DNA from: Ophelia neglecta
Taxonomy: Eukaryota
NCBI GenBank assembly: GCA_965285935.1
Contig: OZ260664.1
Coordinates: forward strand, 77,066,001 to 77,130,000
Direction of reading: 5' to 3'
DNA: 64,000 bases
Of the stretch, positions 1-60,490 are shown piece after piece. Every line of letters begins with the position of its first letter. Position 1 is the first letter of the stretch. A program made the position numbers and the translations under genes. The notes beneath the pieces were generated by a model that worked only from the letters and a program-made list of their open reading frames with translations, was not told the DNA's origin and ran no database searches.

Positions 1-3000
1 AGCAGAGAGTCTTAATAGCAAATATCGACCGGGCGTGGAGTAATGGGCAGGTATCTGAATTCTTTGTTAGATTTTTTATATTTTAATACCTGGAAATATC
101 TCTTGTTAGAGTTTTACCTCTTGTTGTTTCTTGTTTTCTCACAGTTTAAGTTCATTTAAAACGGCACGCGGCCTCATTTTTTAACCCAGCTCATTCTTTA
201 GGTTTTGGTAAGCCCTGATTAGTCCAAAGGACAAATGACGTAATTTGAGCTATAGAATTCCTCTGTCCTTATAGATTTATTTCTTTGGTGATCACCAGAA
301 AGCCAAATTTATGAAACACTGTCCAAAGTCGCGGCTCCTAAGTAACTGATCAAAGGTCGAGAACGCCATGTAGCTGGTCACGGACGGGGTAGATTTTCCA
401 GTCATCTTTTGTTTGGTGGGTGTATTCAGGGATTCGTTAAGGATCTTAGAAGCAGCCTAATGTAGCACTTCCTTCTACACGATCCGCCATCTATTCTCCA
501 GTGTCACGTCTGGTTGGAGGCTGCGGTCAATGTTTGGCAATAGAGGCCCATTGCCTTTCTTGAAGTTGACGTTTGGTGTACACAGTAATAGCTAAATAAG
601 CCGTTCCAATTTAGGCCGATTTGGGACATTATGAGAGCTAACTCTTCTGATTGTGGCAAATTCCAAAGTAATACAAATTTGATTAAAATCTGACTGGGCT
701 TGAACAGGCTTGCCAGCGTCCTTCTGGAGTGGTGGCGTGGACACAAAGGGCGAACGTCAACACGGCTAAGCCCGGCGGTAATGGAGAACATTGTGGCCCG
801 GCTGGTGGGCACTCTTCACGGTTAGGTCGGCCCTCACCAGGCAAACAAAAAAAGAAACAAACCCTGCTTGAAGAATTTGCCAAAAGCCAATGTCGGTGGC
901 TCCTCTTCAAGTCCTGACTGGTATTTAGCATAACAGTCAACAAACTATAAGGTAAAATCGGAGAATTTCGCTCAAAGTTTAAATCCGCGCAGGAACTATA
1001 GGCTTATTCTGTTCGGAATAAGGCAAGTGAATGCGCGAAATTAAACGATGCCTTTAAACGGAATTAACCGACTGTATTTAGGATATTGAAATATGCGTGA
1101 AAATACCCGACTTTACAGTGCTAATGAGATAGGTCAGCTCGGAAAGACGCGGAACTTTCAATATATTGTTTTATATTTCTTTTGTTATTTTACATTTGTC
1201 ATGTTCATCAATGGTTTTAAACTGTTTTGTTGCAGTCACAAGTCAAATATAATATAGCTTGTTTTATCATCTGTCTTTAATCATGAACGGTTTTCATTCG
1301 GCTGAATCCCCAGCGGTGCTAGGGCGATAATATAGGTCTGTGAATGCAGACAGAGTAAAAAGCTCACAATTCTGATAGTTCCCATCGGGCCGTTAGTTTT
1401 TCTTTTGCACGGAACAGTGAACACCAGATGGGTGTTTTTATTGTTATGTCAGTGTGTATTGTCGACTACTCATCGTTTTATATGGGACGAGTCAAAAGTC
1501 AAGGTCGAGAAGCAGATGTATCTCCCGAATGCGTGCCCGTTCATCTCCTCCGAACCCTGTCAAATGTCCCTAAAAGTTCTCACCGCTCAGCTCGTCTGCG
1601 GTTGTGAAATCTTTTGTTGGAAGGCTCTTAAACCGAACGAATCGGATATGAGCATGTAAATAAGGCCACAAGAAATAAATACCTTGTAAATAAACAGTAA
1701 TACAAACAACCATAGCAAAACTAATGCGCGGAGGATATCGTTTAATTTGCTGATATGGTCACAACAAGAAGTGATTCGTAAATATTGTGGGCAATGTCAT
1801 TAGCCGAGACTAATTCAATTAAGGGGGTCGGTATGCTTGCACACACTCGTCTGCTAATGTCATGGAGAAAGTGAATTATGTGTTTATTTTTATCGGGAGA
1901 ATGAAATCGTACACAGCGGTCAGGCCCGAGTAATCCCTACACAAACAGACTAATGATTAAACCATATAGTTCTCTCACGTAGCTAGTTTGACAGTTCTCG
2001 GTCTTTCACCGTCTCACGGAGGCCGAGAAAAACCAACAAAATCTGGCACTACCGCCGCATTTTCGTGCCTATCTTATTCTGAGCATGTTTAATTACTGGC
2101 CATTTCACGGAGCTAATTTATAAAAGGCTACAATACTAAGGAGTAAATTAAACAATTTAGAGGTGAATGGAAAGGGTGAGAATGGCCGAAGCTCACGAAG
2201 GGAGTGTTAAGCGTGGTCGACACCTTGAATGGGACCCTTCTCACATTAACCAACTCGGCAGCTGTCCTCGGGCCAATTTGGAAGTCCCTTGTCAAATGTG
2301 TAGCTTCTCTCATGCACTAGACCTATTAGGGCCCTATGGTGTAAGATAATCGCTCAACTTACGCCATTCCTTTCCGGGCAGACCGAACTGATCATTTACT
2401 TGTAGGCCAAAGTTGTAAAAGTGTTTTCAAACTTGTCTGATGACAACTACTGCATTCTTTTGATCTTCCGCGAGGCCAGAGACAGTTCTTATTTTTCTGT
2501 AGGGTATGGTGTAGCCTTGTCATTTGGTTAATTACCATAGAGCTAGACCAATTTAGGGGGTTTGTTTCTATTGAAGGTTATATACTGATATGGTTTTAAT
2601 TCTTTTGCACACTCAAAGAGATCAATTTGATTAGATCACCTCAGCCATTTCTGAAATATTCTGAGTGCCCTACACATTGTTTTAGTATGCCTATTGTCCT
2701 GTTAATAACAATAATTATTGACTACACTTCTTTGTGTCAAACATGCCAAGTCAATTGGACATCTTTGTCCCTATAGGAATACTAGCGGCTAAAAGTTAAG
2801 AGGGCTTTTAACCAAAGGTTGGAGAAACTACAATTAGTAAAAAAAATATATTTATTTGTTTTAAGATCCTAATGACCAAGCTTTGACCTATTGAATATTG
2901 GGTACTCTGCAAGCGCTTTTATCAGGGAGAAACATTTGTCCTAGAGAAAGCTTTAATTGTCTTGATCCTTAAAGCTCACCGACTGTATCTGAATAAATAA

Positions 3001-6000
3001 AACTGGGCTGTGCTTGATAGAGGGTGGGATCCAGGGTGTCTGAGTAGGGCTGAGGGTCCGCTGGTGGGGGTGGTGAGGATGTGGGGTCGGTTCCTTTGTA
3101 GCACTGCCCCCAGAAAGGTGGCCCCAAACCCCCGTCTGCGTGGACACTCATCCCACACCCTCGTTCCTGACCCCCCCCCCCCCTCCCCCTTTCTCCATCC
3201 GCCAGCTGGAAGACGGGGACTTGTGACAAATCCCATGTGAATCACTCTGATATTTCAGAAAGCATATCATTCTCGTTTCCATTAGCCGCCTGCCAGAATG
3301 TCGCTTTGTTTTAGACAAGCAAGAAGTTGATCTAGATAGTCTCTGCTATCTAGCTGGTTTGTCTAATGGGATGCCCACTCCGACGATTTTAAATATACAA
3401 GAGATTAACTCAGCGCTTTATCCCCCGGGATCTATACTTGAGTTAATCCTGTCACAGTTGACATAATTAGCCTGTTTGATTCACCGTTGGGGAGATCTCC
3501 CCATGGCGAAAAGTCGTCTGCACTACAATGGCCGCCAATGATGAGAAACAAGTACATCATACTTTGGCGCCTCCTGGTAATACTAAAAGAAAAACATTGT
3601 ACAAGAGACAACTACTCCACTGTAATTCTCTTTCCCTTTCTACCATTCATGGACGAGTAATCTTTGGATTAACTAATTACTTTTCTTTCCTATACCATCT
3701 TTGATTTCACCGATGGACAATATACTTATTGGTAGATAAACAGGTTGTTGAAAATCCAGCAGCTAAATAGAATTACCTTGACTGTGTTTCCAGAAGGCAC
3801 ACACATTCACATGGAGGTGTGTTTAACAGTAATAGCAAGCCGGTATCTCGAACTAATTTGTGTCGAATCCTTTTGGCTTGGATGCGTTTCGTGTATAAAT
3901 ATAGCCATGTTTGTTAAGCAAATCACCTATATTGCAAGCATAATTTCCTGTCAATTTGCTTATGATAATTTCTTACATTAATATATGACTCCCTACCAGA
4001 AGGCAAGTATTTCGGTCACTTCACGGCATCACTGTGTAAATTGAAGTATTGTTATAGTTGAAAACACACTGCTTGTGTTCTCTATTTCACGTATCTAGTG
4101 ACTGAAAAAATACTGCCATATAGGATCACGATTGACAACACTATGAAAGCGAAATTTGCGAAAGTTTTTTTCCATTGAAGTCAACTTCTTTCATCAATAT
4201 TTGCCCTCTGATATATGCTCTCAATATCTATAACTTTGTTGTACTTACAGTTTTTGTGCAGTTTTTTGGACAATATACTGACCCTTAAACATATAATGTA
4301 TTTGATTTAGATTTTTGGGACGAATTTTTGAATGGTTGAATAGAATTCAGCTCCAAAGGCACCATTGAAGTCTACGGTTTACCCTGAAGGCCAGTATAGG
4401 CCTTCAGCCTGATATACACTCAAATATGGATACAGATTTGTTGATTTTTTAGGATATTGTGTGGTATAGTGTTTTAGAATACATAGTTCAAATATTGGTT
4501 AAAGGATAACCTGAAAAATCAAATTTCTCCATTGCTCTATGCCCCCATTAGGAAATATAAATATATATACTATATAAAACTGAAAAATATACTTTAATAC
4601 GATATGTTAACAGAAATTTTAACTAATAACAAAGAACTGAATTGAAAAATTAGCCTGTAATATGCTTCAACATGAATGTTCTTAATAGAATTTTGACTGT
4701 TGGCCTCGTTTTCTAGGACAAGTTATTAACCAGTGAATAGGTATATATATAATACCCAAACAATGACCAATGGATATTTCGTCTTTTTCTTAGATTACGG
4801 ATCGAGAGTTTATTTGAATTAGGCCCTGTAAAGAGACATCACATAGACAGAAAGATGGCGTGGAGAACTCAAAACAAATCTAGTCAGTTTAATTTGTAGC
4901 AAAGAACCACACGAATGAACAAATTCCTCATGGGATCCTTCATCATCTATAGTGATTGACGCCAATACAGGAAGCAACTTAAACAGCATTATAGAGGAAA
5001 AACACCAAACAGTGTGAGGGGACTCCAGTCGTTCTCTATCATCGTGATATTAAACGACATTCACCCTCTTTAAGAAAAGAAGAAAGCCAACTTTGAATGG
5101 CTTCGGTATCTATGCAGTGTGTTTCTTGTACGTTATAGACCGCCATCTCCTCCGTATTATCCTCTCATTGTGTCTTTAGAATATTCATAAGTCTTGGTTA
5201 ATGAAAGAGAAACACTGCAGCACTAGTCTCTTACACCCTGGTCTTCATCGGGGTCGCCTCGCTCCTCCGTCAATAGATATAGGATCTCAAGGTTTTCAAT
5301 TTAGTTTTGTGAGATCAGTGTATTGTTGACTTTAATGTATCACATCAAAGACAGCGTTTCTATAGGAATTCTATAGGATCTGGTGTCCCAAAATGAGATA
5401 TAATCTATCGCCTGCACAAAACTGACAAAATGAACTTCGAATATCAAATTTGGCCTCTATTTTCAGCACTCTTGCAACATTTAAAATGTTTATTTGTAGC
5501 CATGTTGAATATAGTGTGCATTTGAATATCTGCTGTAGCCTATTTGAATATGTTAGTGTTTAGTTAGCAATTTCCACCTTACTTTGAATCTGTGGCGCTC
5601 AAATCCAAAAACATAAAACGCCACAGCATGCCGATCTAAAATATATTATACATGGTAGGCTTAATACGAAACTAAACTATACTTATACAGGTTGCTTTAA
5701 AAGTTTCTATATGGTGTTTTCCATCTAACCTTTCATATTATCAACCGGCACACACAGTATTTGGGCCCTATGCTTGGAAATATATAGGTAACATGTTTAG
5801 CTTTTCTCGGGGTTATTTTCATTAGTCGCGGTCGACGCATAACAGAACTATTATTGCGTGTTTATAAAACAATTACGCATCTCTCCTTTGTGATATTCAC
5901 GTTTAATTAAAGTGTTTCGCAATGTAGGTTCCTTTACTTTTCTGATTGCCCGGGAGCTATTCCGCCCAGTCTAACAAAGCCGTATCTAAGGCTCGGTCTC

Positions 6001-8004
6001 GACATGCGACTCGGACACAGAGGAATCTGGTAGCTCTCTATTTGTACATCCACTTAGTCCGCCATTCCAAAGCAGACGACACCGCAAATGGAAAAGTAAA
6101 ATGAAAACCGTGGTAAAATACGCAAATGAAATAATTACAAGGCCTGTGTGGAGTAAGTGATTGAAAAAGATGCAAGATGAATGGTGGTCTGCTGTGATAG
6201 TGTCAGACGATTAATGTACAAGATGTAGCGTTTTTCCGCGGGAATGCCGGCTGCACGGACTTGAATGTGAAGTCTTGTCCTTCCTACTTGCCTCGCTACT
6301 CATAATTGTATTAAAGCGGGCCTCGCTCGGGGTACCAAACGGCTCCCAGCTCAATTATCTTTCCTAATATCATTTGGAGAAACCACTTAAAGCGGCTACA
6401 CGTGAGGATAAAACGCCCCAGGGGTACGGGGCTATAGTTCTGACCTGTCCCTTGTTCTCCGTGTTGGCAGCAGATCTCGAGTCTTCGCTATCTCCCCATG
6501 ATAATTGTACATCACAACCGCTGTATCAAATGTGATAACTTCTTACATCCCCATTTCTTTCATTTATGAATTATATTTAGCTGGCTGCACGGTCTCTTAA
6601 AGCACGCCATGTGCAGTATAACTGACAGGTACAGATATTTGATATACATCAAATTCACTAGACTCCGATTAACCGGGTGTAGATTAGGAAGATAATCTCT
6701 GCCATTTACCCAGCGGTTACAATGACTTGTATTTATCGCAGAAGATCACAGCCCTTGTCACCCGAAAAGCAAATTAGTTGGCAAAAACCCGTGAAATACA
6801 CAGTCATGCCTGTCGGTCCCTGGTGAACCTTCTAAGAAAACTTTGCAACTCTATCCCCAACTGTCGCTCTCGTCCAAGATTATCAGCGGCAGCGAGGCGA
6901 GGAGGGGGGCCTGGTGGACGAAAAGGGTCCGTCTCAGGGGGGCGAAGGGCAGCAGTGGTGGGGGGCGATAGGCATCTGCAGCCCAAACAACCCCCCGGGT
7001 CAGAGGATCAGCCCAAGACAAAGGCCGTCTGCCTCGAAAGACGTAACCAGCCCAGCACCTAGCGGGCGAATCTGCCAGAGAATGTATAGACACCGCCTTA
7101 CCGGGGGCTTATAATCCTCCTCCGGCCCCCATGATAAGGTCTTCAGCTGAAGATCTTCCCATTTTTGTCTGCCTGAACATTCTGACTGGGCGCGTTTTGA
7201 TTGTAAGAGACTTGAAGTCTGGTTAGTGGCAACTATGCAAACAACCGCAGGGGCTTTGGGTTTGTTTAGGGATTTTTTAGTGAATTAGACGGGTCTCTAG
7301 TGGAGCGATATGAACCTTTAACTATATCGGTGATACAACGCAGGCATATGCTTGCCTCAAACATGTGCCCTAAACACTGCTGCATTCAATGACAATTTAA
7401 TGCTTGACTTTTCCTACTGTCATGATTGCGCTGGGCTAGAGTCACGCAATGTTGTCACGAAAGCCGAGCTGGGCCTCTTCCCTGCTGACCCCGATGCTTT
7501 CTGACAGTTACACGCTGAATAAAGAGTATCAGTGTTAATATCATTAGCCTAGGCAAAGAATGTTTTCCCTGACACAGACCCATTCACACGTCGTGGGTAA
7601 ACTAATCGCGATTAGGCATTACGTTTATGTCGTCTGCAGACAAGATAAAGGGAGTCAACCATGGCTTGACTTAATAATGTAGACCTTGATATTTAAGCTA
7701 TAATAAAACTATTACCCTTGTATTATCCCTAAATGTGTCCTTAGCCTTTATTTGGATGATGCTTAGCATAATATCAGTTTTATTGCTATATCTTCACCTC
7801 TTGAAGCCTTATCTGTTTATTATTTGCCTCTGTTCATAAGCTTTCAGTGGTGTGTTGTTTGTTTGCTTGCAGATTCGCCAGTGAGCTCCGAGTCTTGCTG
7901 AGAACTCTCCCATCCCGCAGCTCCCCCAGACGATAAGCGCGGGCCCAACATGTTTCATTGACTGACATAGTAGTGTCGCCTCACTCCAAACAAAGCACGC
8001 AAGT

Positions 8005-8301
8005 TGTGGGATAAATTAATGAGGTATTTGCATATTCTTTGCTGGCAGTAGTAGTTAAGGACGACAGAATTTAGTCATTAAATGTCGGCCAATCAGCGCA
8101 CGGAGTGATCGACAGTGTGTACCTTCAGCCGGCGGACCGGCTGTCATTCACGGAGACTCGCCCAATCAAAACGCCCGATCGCTCACTCCTGCGCACCGCT
8201 ACCACTTCCAGCAGCAAAGTATACAAGTCGAGCTTACATGCATTACACATAAGGCAAGCACTCGTTTTGCAAGTCAGATCAGTTTGATTGTTTTACAAAC
8301 G
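8005..8301 (+). promoter_or_regulatory. Proximal promoter / 5' UTR of POU3
   Basis: Directly upstream of the ATG are ATAAATTAATGAG (8011-8023), an octamer ATTTGCAT (8026-8033), two CCAAT boxes (GGCCAATCAG ~8087-8096; CCCAATCA 8161-8168) in a CpG-rich stretch, and an Inr-like TCAGTT at ~8279. The TSS cannot be placed exactly. Confidence 0.6.
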
Positions 8302-9579
8302 ATGGCTACAACTGCTGCGAACCCGTACATAGGCACAAACCCAGGATCGTCACTCAGTAGTGTTCTCAGCGACAGTGCCAACATGCAGGTGCCAGTGTCG
8401 CAGACGACTCAGTACCATCACCGGGACTTGGCCGCCGACATGAAGTATATGCCACAGCACCAAAACGGACACCCTCTAAGTCACCACAACCAGTGGCTTA
8501 ACCTCTCCGACAACAACGTTTGGGGCGCCAGTATGGGGAACCACACGATGCACTCTCAGGACATGAAGCCCGGGCTGGGGAACGATGGCCATCACGGTAC
8601 GTTACACCACCGAGCCCAGCAGCAGCTGCACCAGGCCCATGCCGCCTGGTCCACCCCCGTCACCTCCGCACACCTCAACATGTCCAACGGACAGCCTCAG
8701 ATGCAGCACCCTGCCTATATGATGAACGGGGGCATGTTGTCTCCTGTCCAGGGCCCCTACATGAGGGAGAGTCTGGGCCTCCCCGACCCGATGGGTGACC
8801 ACCATGACCACGACCTTCACGGGGAGGGACAGTCGGACGAGGACGCCCCCACCTCCGACGACCTGGAACAGTTTGCCAAACAGTTCAAACAACGGAGAAT
8901 CAAACTCGGATTTACTCAGGCCGATGTCGGGCTCGCTCTAGGAACTCTCTACGGTAATGTCTTCTCGCAAACTACTATATGTCGTTTTGAAGCTCTGCAA
9001 CTCAGCTTTAAAAACATGTGTAAATTGAAGCCACTACTGCAGAAGTGGCTCGAGGAGGCCGACTCAACCAGCGGCTCCCCAACCAGTATAGACAAAATAG
9101 CCGCTCAAGGCAGGAAGCGGAAAAAGCGGACGAGTATCGAGGTGACTATAAAGGGGGCTTTGGAGTCCCACTTTATGAAGTGTCCCAAGCCGGCCGCCAA
9201 CGAAATCAGCCAGCTAGCCGAATCTCTACAACTAGAGAAGGAGGTGGTGCGAGTGTGGTTCTGCAACAGGAGGCAGAAGGAGAAGAGAATGACTCCCACG
9301 CCGGGAACCATCGGACCCAACGGGGAGTTGATACCCATCCCCAACATGGCCAATAACGGCGACCAGAGCCCGATGCACCCGTCGCCGCTCGGACACCCCG
9401 GCAGTCCCATCCACCATTCGGGGGGTGGGGCGGCCGGCTCGCCGCTCGTCCCCGGACATTCTCTTGGCAGCGTCAGTTCCAATTCTTCGCCTTCTTATTC
9501 AGTGCCACAATCCATATACACGAGTACAGGACTAGTTCATCAGACCTCACCACAGGCCCATCATTCACCTACAAACTAG
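8302..9579 (+). CDS. POU3: Class III POU homeodomain transcription factor (POU3 / Brn-1/2/4 / vvl orthologue), single exon, 425 aa
   Basis: The ORF encodes a POU-specific domain ([77 protein letters not shown], ~8836-9066), the class III linker ([14 protein letters not shown]) and a POU homeodomain ([11 protein letters not shown]...[16 protein letters not shown], ~9109-9294). The N-terminus MATTAANPY resembles MATAASNPY of vertebrate POU3F proteins. The ORF-track start at 8284 is TTG; the first ATG is at 8302 in good Kozak context (ACGATGG). Stop TAG at 9577-9579. LLQKWL is the invertebrate (vvl-type) variant. Confidence 0.98.
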
Positions 9580-11810
9580 CAATATGAGGACAACATCTAA
9601 TTTAGATTAGTTTTCTTTGTTGTGTATTTGCTGGTATTACCAGTTTGTAGGCCGTAATGCTTTGGCATGGACCATTCCTGTCCGAGTGTATATTATTCTA
9701 CACGTCACCTAACTTCTGCTGGTGCCAGAAATTGGGCTTTGGGCTGCTCCGTTCCCAAGATAGTCTCAAGAGACCCGCGGTTTTTTCCAACTCCCTAAAC
9801 TATGTACAATGGACTCTCTGGTTCTGCACAAAACCACAAAAACTGACCAGGATTCGCTTTGTGACAGTTGTAGTGTGAGTACAAAATATTATTTGTGTAC
9901 TAAATTGTCAAGCATCCCACGTGGAATTCACGTTGATGAACTGTAGGAGAAAGAATTAGACTTGCAAATCTGACTTTCTCTCTTGATTTAAATAATCAAT
10001 CTGCAATTCAAGATGACACTTACCCTGTCGTCTGCTAAATTGTGGACATGCCCTGATGACTGGGGGTGCTCTCTTCATGTCATCAGGTATGTCATGTATA
10101 ATACTATTGTATTTCTTGTACAAAGATTTAAAGGATTTTTTTAAATTTTAAATGTCTGGGAATCTTGTACAATGATTGCTATATTACCAAGCTGCACATT
10201 TTCCTATAGATGTATATATATATATATATATATATTGATTGTCACAGACTATTTAGTGACATATCTCTCTTGTATATCCACCTAAGAGTTGTTATGATTA
10301 TAACCTGTCCCCGCTGCTCGTAAACGAGAGGACAGCTATGAATACTTCCCCTTCTTGGTCCCTATAGGTGTTTATGTTTTAGTAGCATGTTAACGTTATG
10401 GCAAACAATATCAAAATTACTTTGATCTCGGAGTTATTCTATGTATGATTTGTGCAACATAGCGGCATTTTGACCTATTATTTGAGTGTGTTTATCAGAC
10501 ATTCCACCTATCAGGGCATCAGAATCTTCTGTTGTATTTGGTTTGATATAGGGCCTATATTCTGTCATTCCGCTGCTAGTTGGCTGTATTAAGCCGGACA
10601 ATGTTTAACTTTTCGACTAGTTGGTGAAATGTTTGTATCTGACTTTGCGTGTATTATGGTATTAGAGCCATTCGCTTGTTACAGGCGCAATGCATCTCCC
10701 ATATTGACTTTAGTGTTTGTAGTCAGACGAGTTGTGGTTATCAAACAGTCTGTATGGTTGGCATGCCAGCCCTCCATTATTTCATACACCTGTGTGACAG
10801 TACACCGACATATTCAGTCATAATATCTCCTCAATCATTATAACATTTAACGGTGTAATCATCAGTAGTTCATTATAATGATCTTCATACTGTATTAGCA
10901 CCAACCCCGTGTTAACGTATACTCCGAGACTCCAAATAAGAATGTCTTTAATATCGTCCATTACAATACGTTCATTTCAATACTGCTCGGTGTAGCCCTA
11001 CTTTCGGCCGTTATTTGTCACTGACTGCTTTCTAAATGCCTCAAAACAATCCAGAAAAGGCAGATTACGACAGCATTTGCTTAGAAGAAGGCTATCTCAA
11101 GGCATTCAAGCTTCAACAACTCCGATATAATGGTTACGTTTAAATGCTATTCCAGATATTTGTTGGTTTATTTTTGGAGTTCACGTTCTGGAGTGGAATG
11201 TACTAAATTTTCGTTCATAGTCATATCATGTCCAATGGTGGTAGTTTTGATTCATTCAAACAGGAATTTTGGTTTTTTGGCTTGGAGATGTTTTGTTGCA
11301 ATATTGCACATGTTGTGTATAGTTTGTTCCCAAAGACTGTTGTTAGTCGAATGTTAAAAATCAAGCACCTCGCAGCGAATGTAATAGTATTCAATGACTA
11401 TTATAATATTATTAATTGTACAAATTTATCTATGTCCTAAGTACATGATGTTATATTTCTTTGTATATGTGGTTAAATGAGATGAGTGTCGATGTAAGGG
11501 GTGGAATCAGTAATTTATTGCAATTCATAATGATCAACTATTTTATTTTAAAAGAAACTTCCATGTTAGTAAATGAGTGGAATGAACACTTCATACTGTG
11601 TTATATCATGCATCTTATGTAGTGATTGCACCATTGCCGTAGCTTATACGTGTTCATTATTCTTTTATTTTCCTCCAATGTATTCACAACTAAGTCAATT
11701 TTCTCAGAGAAGTCGAGTGATAGGTGATTCTTAGTCTAACTTATATATTGTAATTGTTTCATGAGGGAGAACAAGAATAATGGAATAAACACGAAAATTT
11801 GTAAATCTGT
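9580..11810 (+). other. Probable long 3' UTR of POU3 (~2.2 kb)
   Basis: T-rich and TGTA-rich sequence follows the stop codon. I saw no AATAAA until 11784. Composition changes to GC-richer enhancer-like DNA after ~11900. Confidence 0.55.
10213..10234. repeat. (TA)n microsatellite in the 3' UTR
   Basis: Perfect run of about 11 TA units. Confidence 0.9.
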
Positions 11811-11820
11811 GGTTTGTCCT
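11784..11820 (+). terminator. Polyadenylation signal
   Basis: AATAAA at 11784-11789, upstream TGTA (11749), and a GT-rich downstream element CTGTGGTTTGTC about 20 nt later. Confidence 0.6.
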
Positions 11821-40031: not shown

Positions 40032-40080
40032 CTATATATATATATGTATATTCATATATATAAGTATATATATATACATA
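40032..40080. repeat. Imperfect (TA)n microsatellite
   Basis: Interrupted TA run. Confidence 0.8.
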
Positions 40081-48930: not shown

Positions 48931-49112
48931 TTATGTTTATTATTATAATAACCATCCGGTGGCAAGATGTGAAAATAATTAAGTAGTATCTATATGTAGT
49001 GGTGCTTTTAATTATTATCGATTATTCACCAGCCAAACTTGAAACAACAAAACCCATTAATAGCTTTTCAAGTTCCAAATGGCAAATATAACAAAAAGTG
49101 GGGTCCTTCAAT

Positions 49113-49896
49113 TTATTATAGTAACAGACTGGTTTGTAATCTCTTGTGTGTACGTATATTGGTCTATTATAATAACAGGCTGGTCTGTAAAATTGTAGAC
49201 CTGTGTGTACGTATACTGGTCTATTATAATAACAGACTGGCCTGTAAGCTTATAGGGGTACGTATACTGGTCTATTATAATAACCAACTGGCCTGTACGC
49301 TTGTAGGTGTGTACGTATACTGGTCTATTATAATAACAGACTGGTCTGTAAGCTTGTAGGTGTGAACGTATACTGGTCCATTATAATAACAGACTGGCCT
49401 GTAAGCTTGTAGGTGTGTACGTATACTGGTCTATTATAATAACAGACTGGTCTGTAAGCTTGGAGGTGTGTACGTATACTGGTCTATTATAATAACAGAC
49501 TGGCCTGGAAGCTTGTAGGTGTGTACGTATACTGGTCTATTATAATAACAGACTGGTCTGGAAGGTTGTAGGTGTGTACGTATACTGGTCTATTATAATA
49601 ACAGACTGGTCTGGAGGCTTGTAGGTGTGAACGTATACTGGTCTATTATAATAACAGACTGGCCTGGAAGCTTGTAGGTGTGTACGTATACTGGTCTATT
49701 ATAATAACAGACTGGTCTGTAAGCTTGGAGGTGTGTACGTATACTGGTCTATTATAATAACAGACTGGCCTGGAAGCTTGTAGGTGTGTACGTATACTGG
49801 TCTATTATAATAACAGACTGGTCTGGAAGGTTTTAGGTGTGTACGTATACTGGTCTATTATAATAACAGACTGGTCTGGAAGCTTGTAGGTGTGTA
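49113..49896. repeat. 53-bp minisatellite, ~15 copies
   Basis: Consensus CTATTATAATAACAGACTGGTCTGTAAGCTTGTAGGTGTGTACGTATACTGGT. Unit starts at 49272, 49325, 49378, 49431, 49484, 49537, 49590 ... 49802, 49855 give an exact 53-bp period. The first units are more diverged. Confidence 0.95.
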
Positions 49897-49899
49897 ACA

Positions 49900-50680
49900 T
49901 AATGGTTTGCAGGTAAATAGTTGACTGTCCGTTAGGACTGTAGCTTGGCTGGCTGTTAACTGTCAATTAGGTTCGTAGGTTGGCTGGCGTACAGTTAATT
50001 GGCAATTATTTGAGTCAGTTGGCTGGCAATTAGTTGACAGGCCAAAAGGATTGTGGCTTATCTGGCCTATACTTGACTGACCAATAGGTTTGTAGGTTGG
50101 ATGGCCTAAGTTGACTGGGCCAATAGGGATGTAGGTTTGATGGCCTTTAGTTAGCTGGCCATTAGGATTGAAGTTTGGCTGGCCTTTAGTTGATTGGCTA
50201 CTAGAATTGTCGGTTGGATGGGCTATTGATAACTGGCAAAAAGGTTGTAAGTTGGGTGATCTTTAGTTGACTGGCCATTAGGATTGCTACTAGGATTGTA
50301 GTTTGGATGGCCTTTAGTTGATTGACCAAGGGTTGAAGGTAAGGTGACCTATAGCTGACTGGCTATTAGGATTGTAGGTTGGATGGCCTATAGTTGAATA
50401 GCCAAGGGTTGCAGGTTGGGCGACCTATAGTTGTCTGGCCTATAGGTTGGATTGTATAAAAGTGACTGGCCAATAGGACTATAAGATTTCTGGCATATAT
50501 TTCACTGGGCATTAGCGTTGTAGGGTGGATGGCTTATATTTGACTGGCCAAACGGTTGTAGGTTGGCTGGCCTAAAAAAGTAACTAGCCATAATGACTGT
50601 AGGTTGTCTGGCCTATAGTTGATTTGCCATTAGGTTTGTGGGTTGGTTGACCTATAACCGACGGACAAGGATAGCCTTTA
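49900..50680. repeat. Degenerate ~39-40 bp tandem repeat (~20 units)
   Basis: Approximate consensus TAGTTGACTGGCCATTAGGATTGTAGGTTGGATGGCCTA, with units near 50031, 50070, 50108, 50147 and 50187. Confidence 0.85.
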
Positions 50681-51284
50681 GCCAATTTGCATACATACAT
50701 GTCTGTGGTTTTCATGGCCTATAACCGATCCGCAGCAGGATGTAGATTGATGTATAACTGTACGTTATACTACGTGTTTTTTCTTGAGCACAGTTCGTCA
50801 ACCCGATCATTTGATTGTCTGGTTATTATAGCAGTGAATAATTTGGTCCGTGTGAACTGATTTTAGGGCGGTGTCCGGAGGGCTGCTGCACGACTCAACT
50901 CTACCCTGTGCCAGACTATTTATTGATATCAGAGCCATTTCATCTTCCTGGGACAGAGTTGGTAGCTGCTGCAAAGGATTCCACTATTCTTACTTTTCCT
51001 GGCTTCGACTACTGGTGTCGGTGTCAGCATGTTCCCTTGGCGGACCCTCGGCGTTTTCCGAAGGCCTGCTGCACGACCAAGCTTAGCACCGGTCACATTA
51101 TTTGTGGCATTCAAAGGCTCTCTTCCTTGGCTAGAGTCGGTACTACCGAAAGCCCTCCTGCACGGCCCAGCTTCGCTCCTGTTGCAATATTGTGTGAATG
51201 TCAAATCTTTATTCTCGGAGTACTGTCGGCTCTGCCCTTAGAGTTGCTGCGGGAATAGTGTCCAGGGTTCTTCTTCCTGGGGAT

Positions 51285-51457
51285 CTCGGAGGAGCTGACT
51301 GGCTGGACGGGCCCAGTCCGTGTTATTTTCGGTGGTCAGAGCTCTTCTCCTTGTGGTACCCTTCACGCCGCTCGGAGGAGCTGACTAGCTGGACGAGCCC
51401 AGTCCGTTTTCTGTTCGGCGGTCACGGCTCTTCTCCCTGGGGTACTCTCCGCACCGC
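51285..51457. repeat. GC-rich 86-bp tandem duplication
   Basis: CTCGGAGGAGCTGACT(G/A)GCTGGACG(G/A)GCCCAGTCCG...GCTCTTCTCC...GGTAC occurs at 51285 and again at 51371. Confidence 0.85.
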
Positions 51458-54400
51458 CCAGCCAGCCGAGCACAGGAACCGCCAGGCTAATCTAATTCCC
51501 CCTAAGCCCCCGTCGCTATATAGTTTTCATCTTTTAATTTCACGCCGCGCTGAATTTCATAAAGCTCCTAGGAAATATCTATCATAGTTAAATCTAAATT
51601 TGTTGATCGCGGCCAAATCAAATCAAAACCCTCACCCATATCGTTACGGCTAATGGCAAGGGAGGCAAAAATTAATGGGCGAACGCGGCAACTAATAAGC
51701 GACGGCTATGGCAAATTTTATTAAGGTCTTAACAAGCGATCGCCTTTTGGCCTTCGGGCTTTTATAGATTTTTCAGATCAAAAGTGGTGGGAGAACCTAA
51801 TATAGGCGAACATCAGTCACTTGGCGGTGGGTAGCTGTCACGGAAACCTCACCGTCAAATTCTTGCCTCTCGGCCGCCATTTAAGTAGATTTCTCTGGTG
51901 GTGCCGTGTCGAGAGTTGCTTTCATGCCCGTGTCTGAAGCAGTTCTCATTTAAAAGGAAGTCCAAGCAGGAAATACTAGAACACTACTCAGATTGAGTTC
52001 GTTTCTTTGTTCGGCCAGGTTTCACGACGGCCCACATACAGCCACGATGCAGTATTGACCTCTAAATGTATCAGAAGCGGTCTGATCGCGAGTACTACAT
52101 CCCAGTAGAACTCATTAGATATTGCACTCGCGTATATGGGTCGGGGAAAGACCAAATCTTGAATACCAATGACCCCTGAGCTGGTATCATTAAGGCCGTC
52201 TACGGCTCGCTGCCGGCTGATAGCAGGTCTAAGCGCCTGTAATGTTACCGCCATTGTCCGACACACTCTATGTAAGTGGATCTAAATATTACTATTACCT
52301 CTTGTAAATAAATAAACCACATCGGTAGCACAACAACGACAAAGGGTTATTGAGGTCAGAAGATAACCCTTTTGTCTGGACGTGACGTCATTTTGAGCAT
52401 GACGAATCAGAAGCCGTGGTTAATGGGCATTATTGCCATAAAAGCAGATATCAGACGGCGAAAGTGATCGTTTGCTGTTCGCCCGTTATCCGGTGCATCT
52501 GTCGATAGCAATCTGCCCGTTTTAGCCGGTCATAATCTTGGTTGTAGCCCGCGTGTCGTAGGATACAATGATAACATGATCCTGTCCCATACTGCCATGC
52601 GACTTTGTCCTGGCTCGGCCCTCAGATGGACGATACCAGCGTCGCTGCCGTGCAGGGCTTACCACAATCTAACTAGGACCGTCTCACGGCCGATTGGAGC
52701 TAAATGATCTCTGACAAACAGACAGGCGGGACTTTCAAACAGATGCGGACGATATCGGCCGTCCAAATAACCTCTCCAGCAGGCCGCTGGCCACTCGTAC
52801 CCGTTCGTAAATCATTTTACTCTCATATCACTGTCAGGAGTTAGGATATGACAGCCTTGTCCACTTGCGTTGGGTCAAATCACAACATGTCATGGTCTTT
52901 TCGCCCCATTTAGCCTCTTCTCTCAATGCATATCCGGTGTCGTGGTAATTTCAGTTCCCGATAAGTAAATCACCAATTGATAAGACTGCTGCCCTATAGA
53001 CACGCGCTTTTTCACATCATAACCGATTAATGGGAATTACACTATCGCGTATTTATCGCTGTTGCCATGAGAACCAATCGTGTTTCTCTTCCGTCACATA
53101 GATCTTCATATTTTGTAGCGAAGGCATGCGTGAACGCTCAATAATTTAAACATGTCTAAGCTATGGCCGGGGCATTTCATCTGATATCCTACGTGGGCCA
53201 GGGGAGGCGGGGGTCTATTTTGAGTTTTAATTTTTGTCAAGCGATACGCGAGTACTTAGCGCCTTTCGAACATAAATTGGGAAGTATTTTGTGTCCCCAA
53301 GCACCCCACCCACCCCACCCCCTATCGCCCGCCTTTGGACACCAGCTAATCCACCCCTGAAACTAACATTGGTGGGCATGAGTATACCTCTAGCATTTTC
53401 GCGAGAACACAGTTAAATATGGTGCTCCACGGAGTAGCAGAGATGATCCTAACAACTAACCACAAAATACACTCAATATGGTGAGTTAATTAATAGCATC
53501 ACGTGGCCTTCTGACCGCTAGGGATCCTGGTTAAAGAGCCATGTTATGGCGGAGGGGATGAATTGAGAACTGTGGAGGTCTTTGGCTTCTTCACAGGATG
53601 ATTTACCGACTCCGGACTCCATCCTCGTCCGATCGGCAGGAGGACAAAGGCCGTTACATGTCGTCCACTAAAGTGAATGAATCCGTGTTTTTGAGAAAGA
53701 ATGACTGGTAGAACTGATCGGTTCTTGATGCCGTTTGCTCTAAGTTTCAACATGCATCATAGTTTAGCAAAATGGTAGGACTTGTAACCAATGTATTTTG
53801 TAGATATTTAGACCTTATTTAAAGCAACCATCAATTTCAGGACAACTTTTTGTAATTTTCATAAACAAAGTTTTATTTATAAATTCATTTCATGTCCTTA
53901 CACGAAGTACCAGTATTTGCCGCGGTTGTTATTGTTCCTGGGATAGGCTTTTGATCGTTTCGCTGTCTCGTCTGATCCCAGCTAGATACTCCGTCTGTTT
54001 ACTTCATCTGTGGAATGAATCGTCTGCCCAGTTCTGGCCTGAATCGATAGATCACGTACAACGCCCTATTAATTTGATAAGTCGCGGCGTGAAGAGCCCC
54101 GAGCCCTAATTACCCTCTGTTGCTCCCCCAGGAACCCCTAAATTAATAGAATATAATATGGAGGGGTCCCTTCCAGTCGCTTACCAGACCAGCATTAGAC
54201 CACGCCTGGTCGGCTCAGAGGGGAATTGGCGAGGACGTGGTCACTTTGAGCTTTTCTGTAGCCCGCCAAGTACTAAGGAGAATCCATGTCCCAATTACGA
54301 GCTAGGTGAAATTAGATTGAAAATGGCAGTCTACAAACAGCGGCAATTCTACAAGTTAGACTAGTCTCCGGCAAGGAGCGATTGCCCACGCCTTGAGCAG

Positions 54401-57400
54401 GATTTCAAGACTGCGAGAAGCCCACACTCTAAATGTGTTGGCCATTCACGCGGTGGAGGCCAATACATTTCTATTAACAACTCACAATTAATCACTTTAA
54501 TAGAGAATGAATCAAAAGTTTCGACGCAGACGAACTGCGGCTCAGTGGAAACTGGCTTCCATTTGCACTAGCCGAAAATGGATTGGCAGCGTTACTTGCT
54601 TCTGAAGCTTGTTGGCGGCAACGGTGATCGTCCGGCAGTCACGTCTGCTCATATTGGCGTGATCTCGGCACGAAGACGAGACTTTGAGCGGTGAAGCGTG
54701 CGCATAGCAGAGGCAGGAAACGAACGTAGTCTGTGCAATGAACTTCCGGTAACACGCGCACGAGCACTTTCCATGCGAGTGAACTTCTTATTATGATGTC
54801 ATTATAAGTAGCCTTTTTGCCTTAATTACCCCTTTCAAGCCAGTAGATTGTTCATCCGAGCGGCCATCGATCTGACATCCATGACTGATGCTGTCGGCCC
54901 GACTTGAACACACTAATCATATATGAATCAGACTTCTAGCGCCAATTTATTATTGCAGGCATTTTTTAATGAAGACTAAATGTTACTTGCACACCTACCT
55001 CAATGACACGCACCAGTTCACAATAAAAACCGCTGATTTTTGTTAGAAAACTATTTGCACGCCATTCCAGTCTGTCCATGGTAAAGCATTGTTTGCCTTA
55101 ATTCTCTTGACTTTAAGGTGAATTTATAAAAAGTAAGCACACGCGAGATACGATAAAGGGATATAAAGCTGCAATGGAACAGTATGGAAGGAACAGTAAA
55201 ATATTAAATTCGAGCATTGTGAATAGAAATCAGGCTCACTAGATTAAGTCTACCAAGCATTATGTTACAAAGAGTATATTTTAAAGTTTAAATGGTGGTA
55301 ATGGTGCTCGTAAAAACGTCATTTTCATTGCTCCTGTTTGCATTTAAATTTGATGAAATGCTTAAATTATTTCTTATTCAAAATTGTTGTTAAAACTAAC
55401 CAAGTTTGGTTATAAGGTTGAAATCCGGGATTTAAGCCAGATCCAATATTATATGAAGAATTTTTGTGGCTAAAATATATGGGAGGATTGGATTTTATAT
55501 GTACTGCGTCATCATTAGCCGGAAAAGCCATCGCAAATTGGGCAACAAACGTCAACAGAGAGTTAGAACTGGGATCAAACTTGTCGGCCAACAAATTAAA
55601 AAAAGGGGATACAGCTCGGGAAACGGCATAAACGTTCGGGACAAAATCATAATTTTGCAGCTTGTCATCAGCTAGATTTTAGTTTCGTATTGTTTTCATT
55701 CAATTCAATTTTAATTCCCCCTAAAATATTACTGTTAAGCAGCGGGTGGGCTTGGTTTGAAATATTTCCAGAGTAGTGAAGATGTAGCAAAGAGAAAATC
55801 CTTGTGGTTTCGGTAACGTATGTTATTCTTTACAGTATTATATACCTGACCTATTGGCCCATTTAACCTACAAAGATGCACAAACAGGCCGACCGAAAAG
55901 GCGTAGGCGTACAAAAGGTCTTGTGGCATTGACAACTGGTAGTACATAAATTTTACATATGAAATTGCTCACCAAAAACACAGAGTAAGGTCTATTAAAG
56001 CTCGCCTTACTTGGCAATGGGTGTGTATATAATAGTTATTCATAAACACTCATAATTAATATACAGGTACCTGTACACCTTTTATTTTGAAAAATGTTAA
56101 TAGCTTTTGACCAAGACCTCAGGTTGGGACAAAGCTTACCTTCTGTCGGCCTGCTCTGTTTTATAAATATAGATCGGGGTGAAAATCACCAATGCCATTC
56201 GCAGATTGGTAAATAAAATGTGGGAGAATCATGCCTTCTTGTTTTATAAGCAATTCAATGGCTGTTCAACGACTTAAGGCCTAGATTGGCAGACGTTTGT
56301 TGGGTGAAGCAGACGAACTGTCAACCTGTATTAGTCAGGTAAAGGTATAGTCTGCTTAAATAACTACTCAATGCGTCCGTGAGAAAAAATAGTCCTTGAT
56401 ATCCAGTATAAAGTCATGGACTAGAAAGATTAGGTCGCCATTTGATTTGTTTAATGTTTCACAGCCATAGCCCCGCCGGCCATTTCCAATGTTTTAGCCT
56501 GTCATTACGGAGTGTTCAGGTAATTGTTGCTATGGAGACGCAGCAATAAAAGCGAGGCTCACAAAAAGCCATTGCTTTTACTTCTCTCGTCATCTATAAC
56601 ACACAAGAGCGACCAAGTGTTGCTAAATAACGAGGGGAGGTATTAGTTCTGACGGTGATCTGCCGGGCAACATGCTGAAAGGTGCTATGGAGCAGACCCT
56701 GGGGAAACATACACTAAAACAGTGTACGCTCACGCCCACATATAAAGTCTTTGTCCTCTGCCTGTAATAGCTATGGGCAGTGATTAAACATTGACAATTA
56801 TCTTGGCTTTGGTTATTTAAAGAATCTTTGTTCATGATTTAAACCCGTGTACTTTTATTGCCATTTCATATAGTTTATATCGTCTTGGTACAGCCCTTGC
56901 CATCGAGTAGTCCTAGTAGTGTTATCTTGGACACGACAGGAACCAGAAAACTGCTGGTTCCCTTATCTCGGAACACGACGGTGTACACACGATGTGGTGG
57001 GGAAGAGCGGCTTTTAAAATCCGATTACATTGATAAGCGAGTGGCAGCAGCTGGAGAGGCCGCCCAGCACCTGTGCCCGAGGCCAGAGAGGGAGGTACAA
57101 TCTGGCCCCTCCCCTCGGCTCCCCACGGGGATAGGCCTCGGGCAGTCGGAGGCAGTCGGTCCCCGGAAAACACCGGCATCTGGCCCTAATAGACCACTCA
57201 TTTGACCATTGACGCATTATCCCCCAATGAAAAGGCTGCTGATAACGGCTTGGAGAAATCTCGCGATCCCCGAACTCGTGACCTTTTTTTTCCGAGGTAC
57301 TGTTTCAAATGTAACTTTTTAAGTATTGAGCATGAATTTGGCTTCTACAAAAGCGTGGGTCGTGTTGAGCTTAATTAGCAGAGTCACCCAATCCGTCCAT

Positions 57401-58499
57401 TTGTACTGGCAATGATTGTTGATGATGAAATTGCTGTTAGTTTTTAAAAGGCACACGGATATTGAGACTCAGGCAGGCGTGGAGTGTAGCACAATGAGCA
57501 CGTACAAGAGGGTCAAATGAGAGTGGAGACTTCTGGGAAAAATCAGCTCCGCCCGAGGCCATCGGATCTGGACAAGGTCCCGTGACGAGGAGCAGTCGAG
57601 CGTGACAGGAAGCTGACCCCGCTCGCACGCAAATCACCAATTTGCTACTCTCTGTGATGGACAGCTCGCATTTAACCCTACCTACTGCTAATTGAGTGGG
57701 GCAATGAACGGAAATGACAGAGTCTCATTCAGCGATTCACTTCAAATGGCTTCGATATTGCTTGTTTACAAGCCTCCTATGAGTTACCTTGCTATGTGTG
57801 ACCGTGTGTGTGGGGGGGGGGGGGGAGGGGGGATGCCCCAAATCTACCACAAGTATAGGGGTGCACTGAGATCAAGAACAAAATATTCTCATTTTAATTT
57901 TATGCTTTCTTCATCCGGTCTTACTCATTCTATAAATGGTTGATCCTATCTATATTAAAAAGTCATTAATCCTTTGGCCTGAATCTGGTTTTTCCTGCTG
58001 TGGGTGCGGTCCATAAGGATACACCAATATGATTCTTTGATTCAACCATATCTTATAATCCAGGCCAGTCTCTATGCATATATTCTTGCATACAAGTCCG
58101 ACACATTGGGTATATATTGGTTTCTAGGTTTGCTACCCTCCCTCCCCCTTTATGGAGGCAGACGACAGGCTGCTGAGTGGCGGGAAAGGAACCCGGAGTA
58201 TCGTGCCAGTATATAGACTCGAGGAGGAAGTGTCCAAATTGAAACACGATTGCTGCCGGTGATTGACGATTGGTGGGGCCGAGTAGGGCAGCCGATATTG
58301 ATCAACCCTACGTGACCTAATTTAACAACATCTCACGCCATGTTTTAATACGAAACGACGGATGGCAGGGAGAGTGATGGATCAAAAGGGTACTTTCTGT
58401 AGTCAATGGCACGGTGAGCGAGTACTGCTCAGAAGACTGGCAGCCACAGACTAGGCCGATGTCCAATGGACAAACTGAGGGACGATTTAGTCCAGATAG

Positions 58500-58680
58500 G
58501 AAGTGCTGATCCATGGCGTCCCACGCAGCAAACCGGATATGACATGTCTGCAGCAGCGCATGCGGAACACTTCCGACGGGAGGGCGGTGCCGTTTTTCAG
58601 GACTTTTTTGTTTCCGCCATCTCCTACGGAATTAATATGTAGGCCCATCCCCATGCCAGCAAAGACAGGAAGTTCCCAAT
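58500..58680. promoter_or_regulatory. Promoter-like cluster: NRF1 + ETS + YY1 motifs
   Basis: GCGCATGCG (58556-58564), CACTTCCG (58568-58575), CCGCCATCT (58614-58622) and CAGGAAGT (~58666) lie in a CpG-rich stretch. Confidence 0.45.
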
Positions 58681-60490
58681 AGTCCACGTGCTTCATTATA
58701 ATTTGGCCATTGTGGTCAGTCAAATTCAAATACTGTCAAATATAAGGTTGACTTGACAGCTCGAGTACTGCTTAATTACATGCCTTAATTGAATTTCAAT
58801 GGGATGGATTGGTGACTGATATTTATCTATTTGCATTCTGGGATATCCCCCTGGGAAAACGACAAACTGTTAGCGTTTGTTCCCGATCTTCATTGAAATG
58901 CAAACTCGACAATTGGTGAATGCTTTTAAGTGGCCAGATCATCATTCTTGTGGGTCATTTAGAGATCGCTGTTTTGTATAGATACACTAGTAAGGCTTTG
59001 AAAGTGATCTCAAAGATAGTGTTACATAGCGAAACCTCTAATTGAAACTCAACTACTGGGCAAACTAATAAATTATTCAGTATTTATCTGATGAGCTTCC
59101 TAGACGCCAGATCATCTCGGAGTGCAACCACTGGTTTAACATGTTAAAGTTCTCTTCTTATTATAATTCGGAGCGTGCGCCTGAAACAAACAGTGGATGA
59201 TCTGATGATATGGTATTGGTTTACGTCACTGATATTTTAGAAGTGGGTGAAAATGTAAAATCCGATCTGGCGGTTCAGATGACACTTGACTTCACTCTTG
59301 CAAAAGACTGGCTGATACCGCTAACGTTAGAGCACTTGGCGATATTAAACCTTTGTAAATTAGTATGCAACGCATTTATGGCAGAGTTGTGTTTAACACT
59401 GCAAAGAAAGCCTCTTAGCCCTGTTTTAGCAAATCTTCCTACGTTTGTCCTTCGGCAGCTTCTAAGCCTAGTAGTAGTACTAGAGAATCAATATTGGCGC
59501 CAAAATCTGGAAAGATTTGTCGTCTGCCTATAACTAAATCAGATAAATCATGGTATTAAAGCTCTTCTCATGACTCACTTCAAAACAAAACACAACATGT
59601 TCCAAAATGGGTCTATCTACCATCGGGGTCGACTCCGTCTGGTTATCCAACCACTCATTAGAACCCTGGCCTTATCACATTCCAGTCTAAGCGATTGTTC
59701 TCATGTCAACTGAAACTGGTAATATTGTACTTAGGAAACCACAACTTGTTTTAATTTGCCTTCAACTCTTGCAGTAATAACAATAAATATTTATTTCGTC
59801 CACTGGCACGAGCGAATTAGGCAGTTAAATTTAAATCATAATCTTTTTAGCGTTCAATGAGTTTTGGAAATGGTGTTGGTAGTGTTTTCGTTAGCCATTG
59901 TAGGAATCGTTTACAGCAAATAATGTACCAATTACTAAGCCTACCGGCGAGCAAATAAAGTTTGATTGCATTGGACAAAGACACCGGGGCAGTCAATGGA
60001 GCTAGGTACGACCAAGGGCCGTGATGGTCAGCTACAATACCCCACCTGCTGACTAGAGCCCACCTGAGAGGTCCGGCTCTCCTTGTGCTAATACTCGAAA
60101 CCTCTCTTTATTTACTTCTCTTTAAACATCTTTGTGTCACCAGCCACTTTACCACTCCTCTCGCTTTCGCCAAACGACATTCGATTCCACTAAATTCCAC
60201 ATTTATAGGTCTGCCACCCGTAAAGACCCATTTGCATTGTTCTATTGCAATAAATATACGTTAGAAATGGGTGACAAGTTGTTTCGAGTTTCGCTTCCAC
60301 TACCTACTGCATGCTATCAAATGAAAAGACCAAACGTCGGCAGATATTATAAGGCATTGTCCTCGTGTTAAGCCCTGGTGACATATTTGGTCAGGAGCTA
60401 AGGAAACAGGTGATGGCGGATTACGACAAATGTCAAGGAACAAGAAAACTCGCGATGTCACGTGCAGTTTAGAAGGATTTTAGAACAACA

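Follow-up and report, generated by a model that had tools for sequence, protein, structure and literature searches.

How the DNA around a developmental regulator is recognised as one territory is the question raised by the POU3 locus of Ophelia neglecta. Developmental-gene landscapes are kept free of transposons and of methylation and are placed under Polycomb-type control. To our knowledge, the only animals in which recognition of such landscapes as a whole is understood are flies, where response elements serve this end, and vertebrates, where CpG islands do, and we know of nothing comparable for spiralians. The stretch analysed here (the window; 64,000 bp, C7:77,066,001-77,130,000 of a 762-Mb assembly) contains an intronless class III POU gene and dispersed copies of a short word with the core TCGTCTGC, which the original prediction put forward as the site of a DNA-binding or chromatin-organising factor. 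This near-invariant 11-bp word, found in sharply bounded, dense domains at POU3, Hox and other regulator loci, provides a simple handle on the question. We read it as a putative site of a lineage-specific DNA-binding factor that marks developmental, probably Polycomb-type, domains and, judging from the sequence comparisons described below, give this reading a probability of roughly 0.55.

The word and its definition

Three forms of the word are distinguished: the 8-letter core TCGTCTGC, the 9-mer GTCGTCTGC (reverse complement GCAGACGAC) and the 11-mer T-G-TCGTCTGC-T. On recount, all 21 coordinates listed for the 9-mer on the two strands proved exact, as did the 14 additional 8-mer positions, and the window therefore holds 35 cores. 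Shuffles preserving dinucleotide composition contain a mean of 0.23 copies of the 9-mer (maximum 1) and are expected to contain 0.90 cores; the enrichment of the 9-mer is thus ~90-fold. Measured against the mean density of this genome, the window is enriched 20-fold for the 9-mer and 15.6-fold for the 8-mer. Poly-C runs and one tandem array aside, no 8- to 10-mer in the window is more strongly over-represented than the word. The extensions had also been read correctly, with 15 copies reaching TGTCGTCTGC and 10 having T next, and eight window copies are complete 11-mers. No stretch of N was met in the DNA examined.

The word is sharp. Each of the 24 one-letter variants of the core occurs between 0 and 4 times in the window, compared with 35 exact copies, and no substitution of the central T-G rises above background. 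Retention of the CpG, as claimed originally, is borne out by the deaminated variants TTGTCTGC and TCATCTGC, which stand at background with 4 and 1 copies. A matrix built on 79 oriented copies (from the window, the window flanks and 30 homeobox loci) is informative outside the core only at T(-2), G(-1) and T(+1), and there is no further information within 15 bp of the core in these copies. A palindromic extension, CAGACGTCTG, was sought around the copies and is absent. Matches from flank to flank at k = 2, 3 and 4 were found in 9, 2 and 0 of the 79 copies, with ~5.3, 1.4 and 0.4 expected. As the flanks hold no information and no direct repeats border the copies, the word is a free-standing site of ~17 bits and not the heart of a repeat family. 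A repeat family or transposon relic was rejected because the 79 copies show no similarity past positions -2 to +1 and have unrelated flanks; the original view that this is not a transposon family, supported here by the lack of flank information and of a target-site duplication, stands. The halo of decayed copies that was also looked for in the window is absent, given the scarcity of one-mismatch variants and the background level of CpG decay.

Contigs of three sequencing runs from one sample, the sole public runs in which this DNA is present, span all seven copies between 40.95 and 46.95 kb. They differ from the assembly by ~1.2% over these 6 kb; none of the 40 differences listed (29 more are not in that list) falls in any of the seven copies, where ~0.7 would be expected by chance. 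An adaptor or assembly artefact was rejected on the presence of the copies in the contigs of the three runs and on their locus-specific distribution.

The POU3 domain and the arrangement of copies within it

With 100 kb added on each side of the window for the analysis of the domain, the word-rich territory was found to span ~100 kb, from 28 kb before the start of the window to +72 kb (C7:77.038-77.138 Mb). Forty-eight cores lie in this ~103-kb domain, compared with none in 72 kb to the left and seven in 92 kb to the right. The end at 59.6 kb that had been claimed is not a limit, since five further copies follow at +64 to +72 kb, just past the window. POU3 is the sole gene inside the domain. 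The CpG observed/expected ratio of the domain is ~0.8, as it also is in the word-free left flank. That flank bears retrotransposons, among them an intact gypsy-type polyprotein frame of 1,371 amino acids with reverse transcriptase, RNase H and integrase, and the retrotransposon-bearing stretch has no copy of the word. The right flank is CpG-depleted (observed/expected 0.33-0.47), as is characteristic of methylated gene bodies, and its genes are ordinary ones (ODR4-like, ZZ-finger, DUF5054).

Within the domain the copies are spaced as in a Poisson process, with a coefficient of variation of 1.00, a median distance of 1.6 kb and ~1 copy per 2 kb. The gaps that had been noted at 18.3-23.3 and 46.4-54 kb do not exceed chance; the largest gap is 8.9 kb and random placement gives a mean maximum of 9.1 kb. 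Both orientations occur, as had been stated (26 on the plus and 22 on the minus strand), and neither regular spacing nor strand polarity was found in the domain. The GC-richer, TAAT-rich setting described for the copies was not supported, there being no GC or TAAT peak at the sites and only a small local rise in CpG. The suggestion of one site per enhancer block fares no better, as Poisson-like spacing, mixed orientation and the inclusion of exons leave it unsupported and the spacing matches random placement. A purely non-coding enhancer role is likewise at odds with the finding that six of the 24 copies near homeobox exons, as well as one POU3 copy, lie inside coding frames; coding frame makes up 17.6% of the homeobox-exon sequence. 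The copies carpet the domain, coding exons included.

Two tandem arrays lie in the middle of the landscape, at 49114-49896 and 50031-50656, with 53-bp units (14.8 copies) and 39-bp units (~16 copies). The arrays at 49114-50656 explain the other over-represented k-mers of the window and one word-free gap.

Genome-wide excess and association with developmental genes

The whole assembly contains 26,791 cores, 12,297 9-mers and 3,044 11-mers. A genome-wide count confirms the excess: the 11-mer total compares with 105 and 127 for two composition-matched words with one CpG, and the core total with 5,757 and 7,478 for two such controls. The 11-mer is therefore 24-29 times and the core ~4 times as frequent as its matched controls, a surplus of ~15-20 thousand cores. 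These composition-matched words were preferred because the reversed word is not an independent control; it still holds CGTCTGC or the entire core, and hence understates the enrichment.

The tie to developmental landscapes proposed originally is upheld around 30 homeodomain exons, where 95 kb of sequence contain 24 cores, ~7 times the genome mean. Thirteen of these 24 belong to ten exons of the collinear Hox cluster at C1:60.5-61.1 Mb. On C1, a hand tally of the first 100 11-mers found 39 with a neighbour within 20 kb, where ~13 would be expected, and one 11-mer cluster, at C1:22.89-22.97 Mb, sits among five homeobox genes. Two 14-mer extensions of the word gave 168 usable instances genome-wide, of which 11.3% have an exon of the homeobox, Fox, HMG or bHLH families no more than 100 kb away, compared with 3.0% for a control word and with the 5.2% of the genome that lies so close (binomial P = 0.001; Fisher P = 0.02). 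The 14-mers also have bHLH exons (C2:85.48, C7:72.27, C8:61.14, C8:73.61 Mb) and one HMG-box exon (C1:54.42 Mb) nearby, indicating that the word is not confined to homeobox genes. The part of C1 with full lists of 11-mers contains no mapped Fox, HMG or bHLH coordinates.

Several further observations concern the distribution over the assembly. The Hox cluster comprises ten or more homeodomain exons on a single strand over ~560 kb (C1:60.52-61.08 Mb), and nearly all transcription-factor genes were found on seven very large contigs (C1, C2, C5, C7, C8, C9 and C12). Repeated independent matches to the 11- or 14-mer at C7:22.46-22.81 Mb and C1:21.6-25.1 Mb mark candidate further domains; the latter interval contains 45 of the first 100 11-mers of C1 and has five homeobox genes at 22.86-22.99 Mb. 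Runs on the same strand, with a regular spacing of a few kb or with identical 14-mers, occur at C1:3,512,985-3,531,362, C5:8.82-9.71 Mb, C5:107.02-107.04 Mb and C12:64.91-64.97 Mb. These runs on C1, C5 and C12 are probably tandemly duplicated units, slightly inflating the genome count.

Companion sites

An unbiased comparison of words in the 60 bp on either side of 72 copies with the remainder of the same DNA brought out E2F-like sequences, TCCCGCC occurring 9 times (0.8 expected) and TTCCCGC 8 times (0.7 expected). Of the 72 copies, 13 have a match to the degenerate form TTSSCGC within 60 bp (2.7 expected), at varying distance and orientation, and seven have one to TTTSSCGC (1.1 expected). 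In the domain, TCCCGCC is found within 50 bp of eight of the 48 copies (1.0 expected), and the TTCCCGC(C) sites of the window entered in Table 1 are 16-30 bp from copies. Half-words were also frequent: ATGTCG is near 15 of the 72 copies, where four would be expected, and half-words of the form (C)ATGTCG(G/T)C cluster around the copies. The search for partners near the copies revealed no association with GC, TAAT, Tcf, E-box, GAGA/GAGAG or KLF-like sequences.

YY1/Pho-like sites belong to the domain rather than to single copies. The ~103-kb domain contains 12 copies of AGATGGCG (1.8 expected), compared with a single one in 161 kb of flanks, and 19 copies of GATGGCG or its complement CGCCATC, mostly as A-GATGGCG-G, compared with seven in the same flanks.

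Comparison with known motifs

None of the known motifs tested matches the word, and a literature search for the word itself returned primers and unrelated sequences only. Its likeness to Smad-binding and Dpp elements had been pointed out from the start, and the word does contain CAGAC and GACGAC; it differs in that, as was also recognised, the boxes overlap (they share 3 bp) where the Dpp silencer has 5 nt between them, and no canonical Dpp silencer or activating element results. The Dpp/BMP silencer GRCGNC-N5-GTCTG was rejected, as neither the window nor the domain has a match to it, and the BMP activating element GGCGCCA-N4-GNCV likewise with 0 matches. The sites of HINFP (GCGGACGTT) and PROX1/Prospero (core AAGACG) presumably have GACG or AGACG in common with GCAGACGAC, and HINFP would fit ~6 of the 8 core positions; the mismatched letters are invariant in the word.

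The Zelda TAGteam heptamer CAGGTAG is a regulatory word of early insect development. It is likewise lineage-restricted, near-invariant, present in both orientations and over-represented in early developmental regulatory DNA, but its sequence is different, and Zelda sites cluster in enhancers whereas the word shows no modular clustering and includes coding exons. The MSL recognition elements of flies and the rex/MEX motifs of C. elegans mark the X chromosome for dosage compensation. These words, too, occur in many copies over a defined territory, on which they are thought to load a territory-wide chromatin complex; they mark a sex chromosome, however, and the present word marks autosomal developmental-gene landscapes of ~100 kb. 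CTCF-type border sites were rejected on the uniform density and mixed orientation across the domain and, by inspection only, on the lack of likeness to the CTCF consensus. The word itself is not an E2F site (TTTSSCGC).

Drosophila Polycomb response elements (PREs) contain words for Pho/YY1 (GCCAT) and for the MADF protein Adf1 (ACGBCGRC) (PMC10379775), and Adf1 occupies such elements (PMC4009610). The fly words, like ours, are short, and they are read by sequence-specific recruiters at homeotic and developmental loci; moreover, the YY1/Pho-like AGATGGCG(G) is enriched in the present domain too, and the left half of the word, GTC-GTC, has a triplet look similar to that of the Adf1 site. Neither identification holds. 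The word lacks the GCCAT core of a Pho/YY1 site, and no core copy overlaps a match to the Adf1 consensus (PMC10379775), which occurs 11 times in the domain and five times in the flanks. A PRE cluster of the Drosophila type was also rejected, on the Poisson-like spacing and on the co-location with the copies of E2F-like words only, and not of YY1-like, GAGAG or KLF-like ones.

A proposed domain-marking site and its alternatives

The ~25-fold genome-wide excess makes the docking site of a DNA-binding protein the most likely explanation of the word, and a site of ~17 bits suggests several zinc fingers, or a domain of the MADF or BEN type. The analysis shows that the word exists, that it is sharp, where the domain ends, that the word is in excess genome-wide and that it prefers particular loci; binding, selection and a role in chromatin are our inference. 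In the proposed mechanism, a lineage-specific protein would read T-G-TCGTCTGC-T, and selection would keep the word as a dense, randomly placed carpet of ~1 copy per 2 kb, in either orientation and across exons and non-coding DNA alike. Such a carpet would span whole transposon-free, CpG-retaining landscapes at POU3, Hox, other homeobox and some bHLH and HMG loci, where the many bound copies may set or stabilise a chromatin state for the entire domain. As the copies form a uniform carpet and not modules, the protein probably acts by copy number on the domain as a whole. Polycomb-type repression or poising is the likeliest such state, exerted jointly with the YY1/Pho-like and E2F-like sites of the domain; it is suggested by the nature of the loci (Hox, POU3), by the YY1/Pho-like enrichment and by the E2F-like sites close to the copies, which are reminiscent of PRC1.6, a complex that contains E2F6.

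Several findings weigh against this interpretation. The E2F association partly reflects the CpG-rich setting of the copies, which raises control sequences as well (AASSCGC 5 compared with 1.7 expected, CGCG 16 compared with 8.1), and is only about twice the general effect of CpG richness. In the domain, the YY1-like sites are not co-located with copies of the word. Some ~89% of the strong copies lie more than 100 kb from the four mapped transcription-factor families, and the developmental link is no exclusive rule but a two- to three-fold tendency together with a few dense domains; tandemly repeated units, moreover, contain some of the copies, as at C1:3.513-3.531 Mb and C5:8.8-9.7 Mb. Fly PREs are discrete clusters of a few hundred bp, whereas the copies here are randomly placed over 100 kb and equally dense in exons. 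Finally, a comparison was made with the POU3 loci, including flanks of at most 10 kb per side, of nine further spiralian assemblies (Tubulanus, Haliotis, Liolophura, Argopecten, Paralvinella, Owenia and three more), and the word is absent from all nine loci, which hold 0-2 cores each, as by chance, compared with ~seven here over the same span. This absence implies that the word is young or lineage-restricted. No analogous dispersed words were found at the POU3 loci of the other species, whose top k-mers are tandem or coding repeats. In a quick POU3 tree, the gene of the window does not belong to the mollusc clade (support 97) and groups, with weak support, with sequences of annelids and phoronids.

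Of the rival explanations, an activator or pioneer site of the Zelda kind, priming many single enhancers with no domain-wide role, would account for an exact word in both orientations enriched at developmental transcription-factor loci, for the weak homotypic clustering with half-words and CGTCTG variants that is typical of enhancer sites, and for the small local CpG rise and E2F-like neighbours. We nevertheless regard it as rather unlikely, since the spacing has no modules, TAAT, GC, Tcf and E-box sequences are not associated, and the density is equal in and out of coding frames and uniform right to the sharp domain edges. Those edges match the switch from transposon-free to transposon-bearing or genic DNA, and might, together with the many copies per domain and the enrichment of sites like those of YY1, a vertebrate looping factor, suggest an architectural protein that holds the POU3 landscape as one contact domain by looping, tethering or insulation. 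The copies are neither concentrated at the edges nor convergent, however, one copy per 2 kb is much denser than known insulator sites, and the word, by inspection only, is unlike the CTCF consensus; an architectural role is accordingly judged unlikely.

The random placement and orientation, the indifference to coding status and the lack of a fixed partner motif would also be expected of copies with no selected function, whether relics of an extinct mobile element (its excision footprints or its ends) or products of a local mutational or repair bias in germline chromatin, and the lineage restriction of the word and the repeated units in part of the genome count agree with this. It is nonetheless improbable: the dissimilar flanks carry no target-site duplication, the halo of one-mismatch or CpG-deaminated copies expected of relics is missing, the domain is transposon-poor while the transposon-bearing flank has no copies, and no mutational process is known to write a word of 8-11 bp. 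A compact Smad element for BMP/TGF-beta signalling, with a Mad-type GACGAC overlapping a Medea-type CAGAC, draws on the GTCTG/CAGAC and GACGAC (GRCGNC) visible in the word and on the fact that developmental genes are typical BMP targets. Besides the 3-bp overlap of the boxes and the lack of GRCGNC-N5-GTCTG, GGCGCCA-N4-GNCV and GTCTAGAC in the domain, the boxes alone are hardly enriched (GTCTG 181 compared with 138 expected, GACGAC 33 compared with 19), and the other spiralian POU3 loci lack the word, although conservation across animals is the rule for Smad sites; this explanation is highly improbable. That base composition, or CpG retention in unmethylated DNA, produced the excess as a by-product is hardly credible. 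The word has a CpG and the domain a CpG observed/expected of ~0.8, compared with 0.35-0.45 in neighbouring gene bodies, but the left flank reaches ~0.8 too with 0 copies in 72 kb, dinucleotide shuffles expect 0.9 copies, and matched CpG control words fall short of the word genome-wide by factors of 4 (8-mer) and 24-29 (11-mer); the shuffles, the left flank and the control words together refute it.

If a domain-marking site is the correct reading, the word would point to a new domain-marking factor and would indicate that such factors turn over between lineages. A bolder form of the idea, held only tentatively, is that the word may be a lineage-specific "domain identity code", in which one protein and a random carpet of an 11-bp word set a domain-wide state through copy number; the state could be Polycomb-type silencing or poising, transposon exclusion or the exclusion of DNA methylation. 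If this were so, the entry-site words of dosage compensation would have an autosomal equivalent in this word, which would explain landscape recognition in an animal without fly-type response elements or vertebrate CpG islands. New here are the domain limits, the independent genome-wide controls, the random carpet that includes exons, the bHLH and HMG neighbours, the absence of the word from other spiralians, and its E2F-like and YY1-like company.

Features of the locus

Table 1. Copies of the word and other features of the POU3 locus (positions in the window, counted from its first base, unless a flanking locus is named)
Feature	Position	Strand	Basis or remark
Central 64 kb of word-rich domain	1..64000	.	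core counts in window and added flanks
Core TCGTCTGC	1592..1599	+	8-mer match
Core TCGTCTGC	1847..1854	+	8-mer match
GTCGTCTGC	3513..3521	+	9-mer match
GTCGTCTGC, full 11-mer	6072..6080	-	exact match
GTCGTCTGC, ~670 bp 5' of POU3 ATG	7629..7637	+	exact match
Intronless POU3 (class III POU) coding sequence	8302..9579	+	open reading frame; Pou and Homeodomain relatives, 61-67% identity
GTCGTCTGC within POU3 coding sequence, codons Q-T-T	8400..8408	-	exact match and open reading frame
GTCGTCTGC, full 11-mer	10027..10035	+	exact match
Core TCGTCTGC	11879..11886	-	8-mer match
Core TCGTCTGC	12942..12949	-	8-mer match
GTCGTCTGC, full 11-mer	16760..16768	+	exact match
GTCGTCTGC; weaker variant TCGTCTGT 30 bp upstream	17596..17604	+	exact match
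Core TCGTCTGC	18214..18221	+	8-mer match
Inverted pair GTCGTCTGC, 9-bp spacer, GCAGACGAC; sole such pair in window	23391..23417	.	exact matches
Core TCGTCTGC	24191..24198	+	8-mer match
GTCGTCTGC	26848..26856	-	9-mer match
GTCGTCTGC, full 11-mer	27537..27545	+	exact match
GTCGTCTGC; E2F-like TCCCGC at 32264-32269	32280..32288	-	exact match
GTCGTCTGC	33430..33438	+	9-mer match
Core TCGTCTGC	34651..34658	+	8-mer match
GTCGTCTGC; E2F-like TTTTTCCCGCC at 35915-35920	35931..35939	-	exact match
GTCGTCTGC, full 11-mer	36495..36503	-	exact match
GTCGTCTGC, full 11-mer; E2F-like TTCCCGCC at 38832-38837	38861..38869	+	exact match
GTCGTCTGC; E2F-like GCGGGA at 40957-40962	40986..40994	+	exact match
Core TCGTCTGC; E2F-like TTTTCCCGCC at 42569-42574	42550..42557	-	8-mer match
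GTCGTCTGC	42627..42635	+	9-mer match
Core TCGTCTGC	44358..44365	+	8-mer match
GTCGTCTGC, full 11-mer	45395..45403	-	exact match
Core TCGTCTGC	46197..46204	-	8-mer match
Core TCGTCTGC; variant GCGTCTGC ~20 bp off	46326..46333	-	8-mer match
Core TCGTCTGC	54020..54027	+	8-mer match
Core TCGTCTGC	54526..54533	-	8-mer match
Core TCGTCTGC	56309..56316	-	8-mer match
GTCGTCTGC; E2F-like TTTCCCGCC at 58180-58185	58158..58166	-	exact match
GTCGTCTGC	59519..59527	+	9-mer match
GATGGCG / CGCCATC (starts)	485, 4854, 5141, 12059, 31847, 32516, 32830, 35228, 58615, 60412, 61107, 63595		window
Gypsy-type and LINE-type endonuclease and reverse transcriptase frames	L036:66-4178 (-), L036:7820-8497 (+), L038:216-2417 (-)		90-67 kb before window

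Upstream of the ATG at 8302, the POU3 frame remains open for another 81 codons, so that 8059-9579 is a stop-free stretch of 506 codons. A short element at 43150-43350 has many alternative joints in the run contigs and a depth there of ~76,000, where ~30 is usual; a repeat of very high copy number is thus inserted in an otherwise transposon-free domain.

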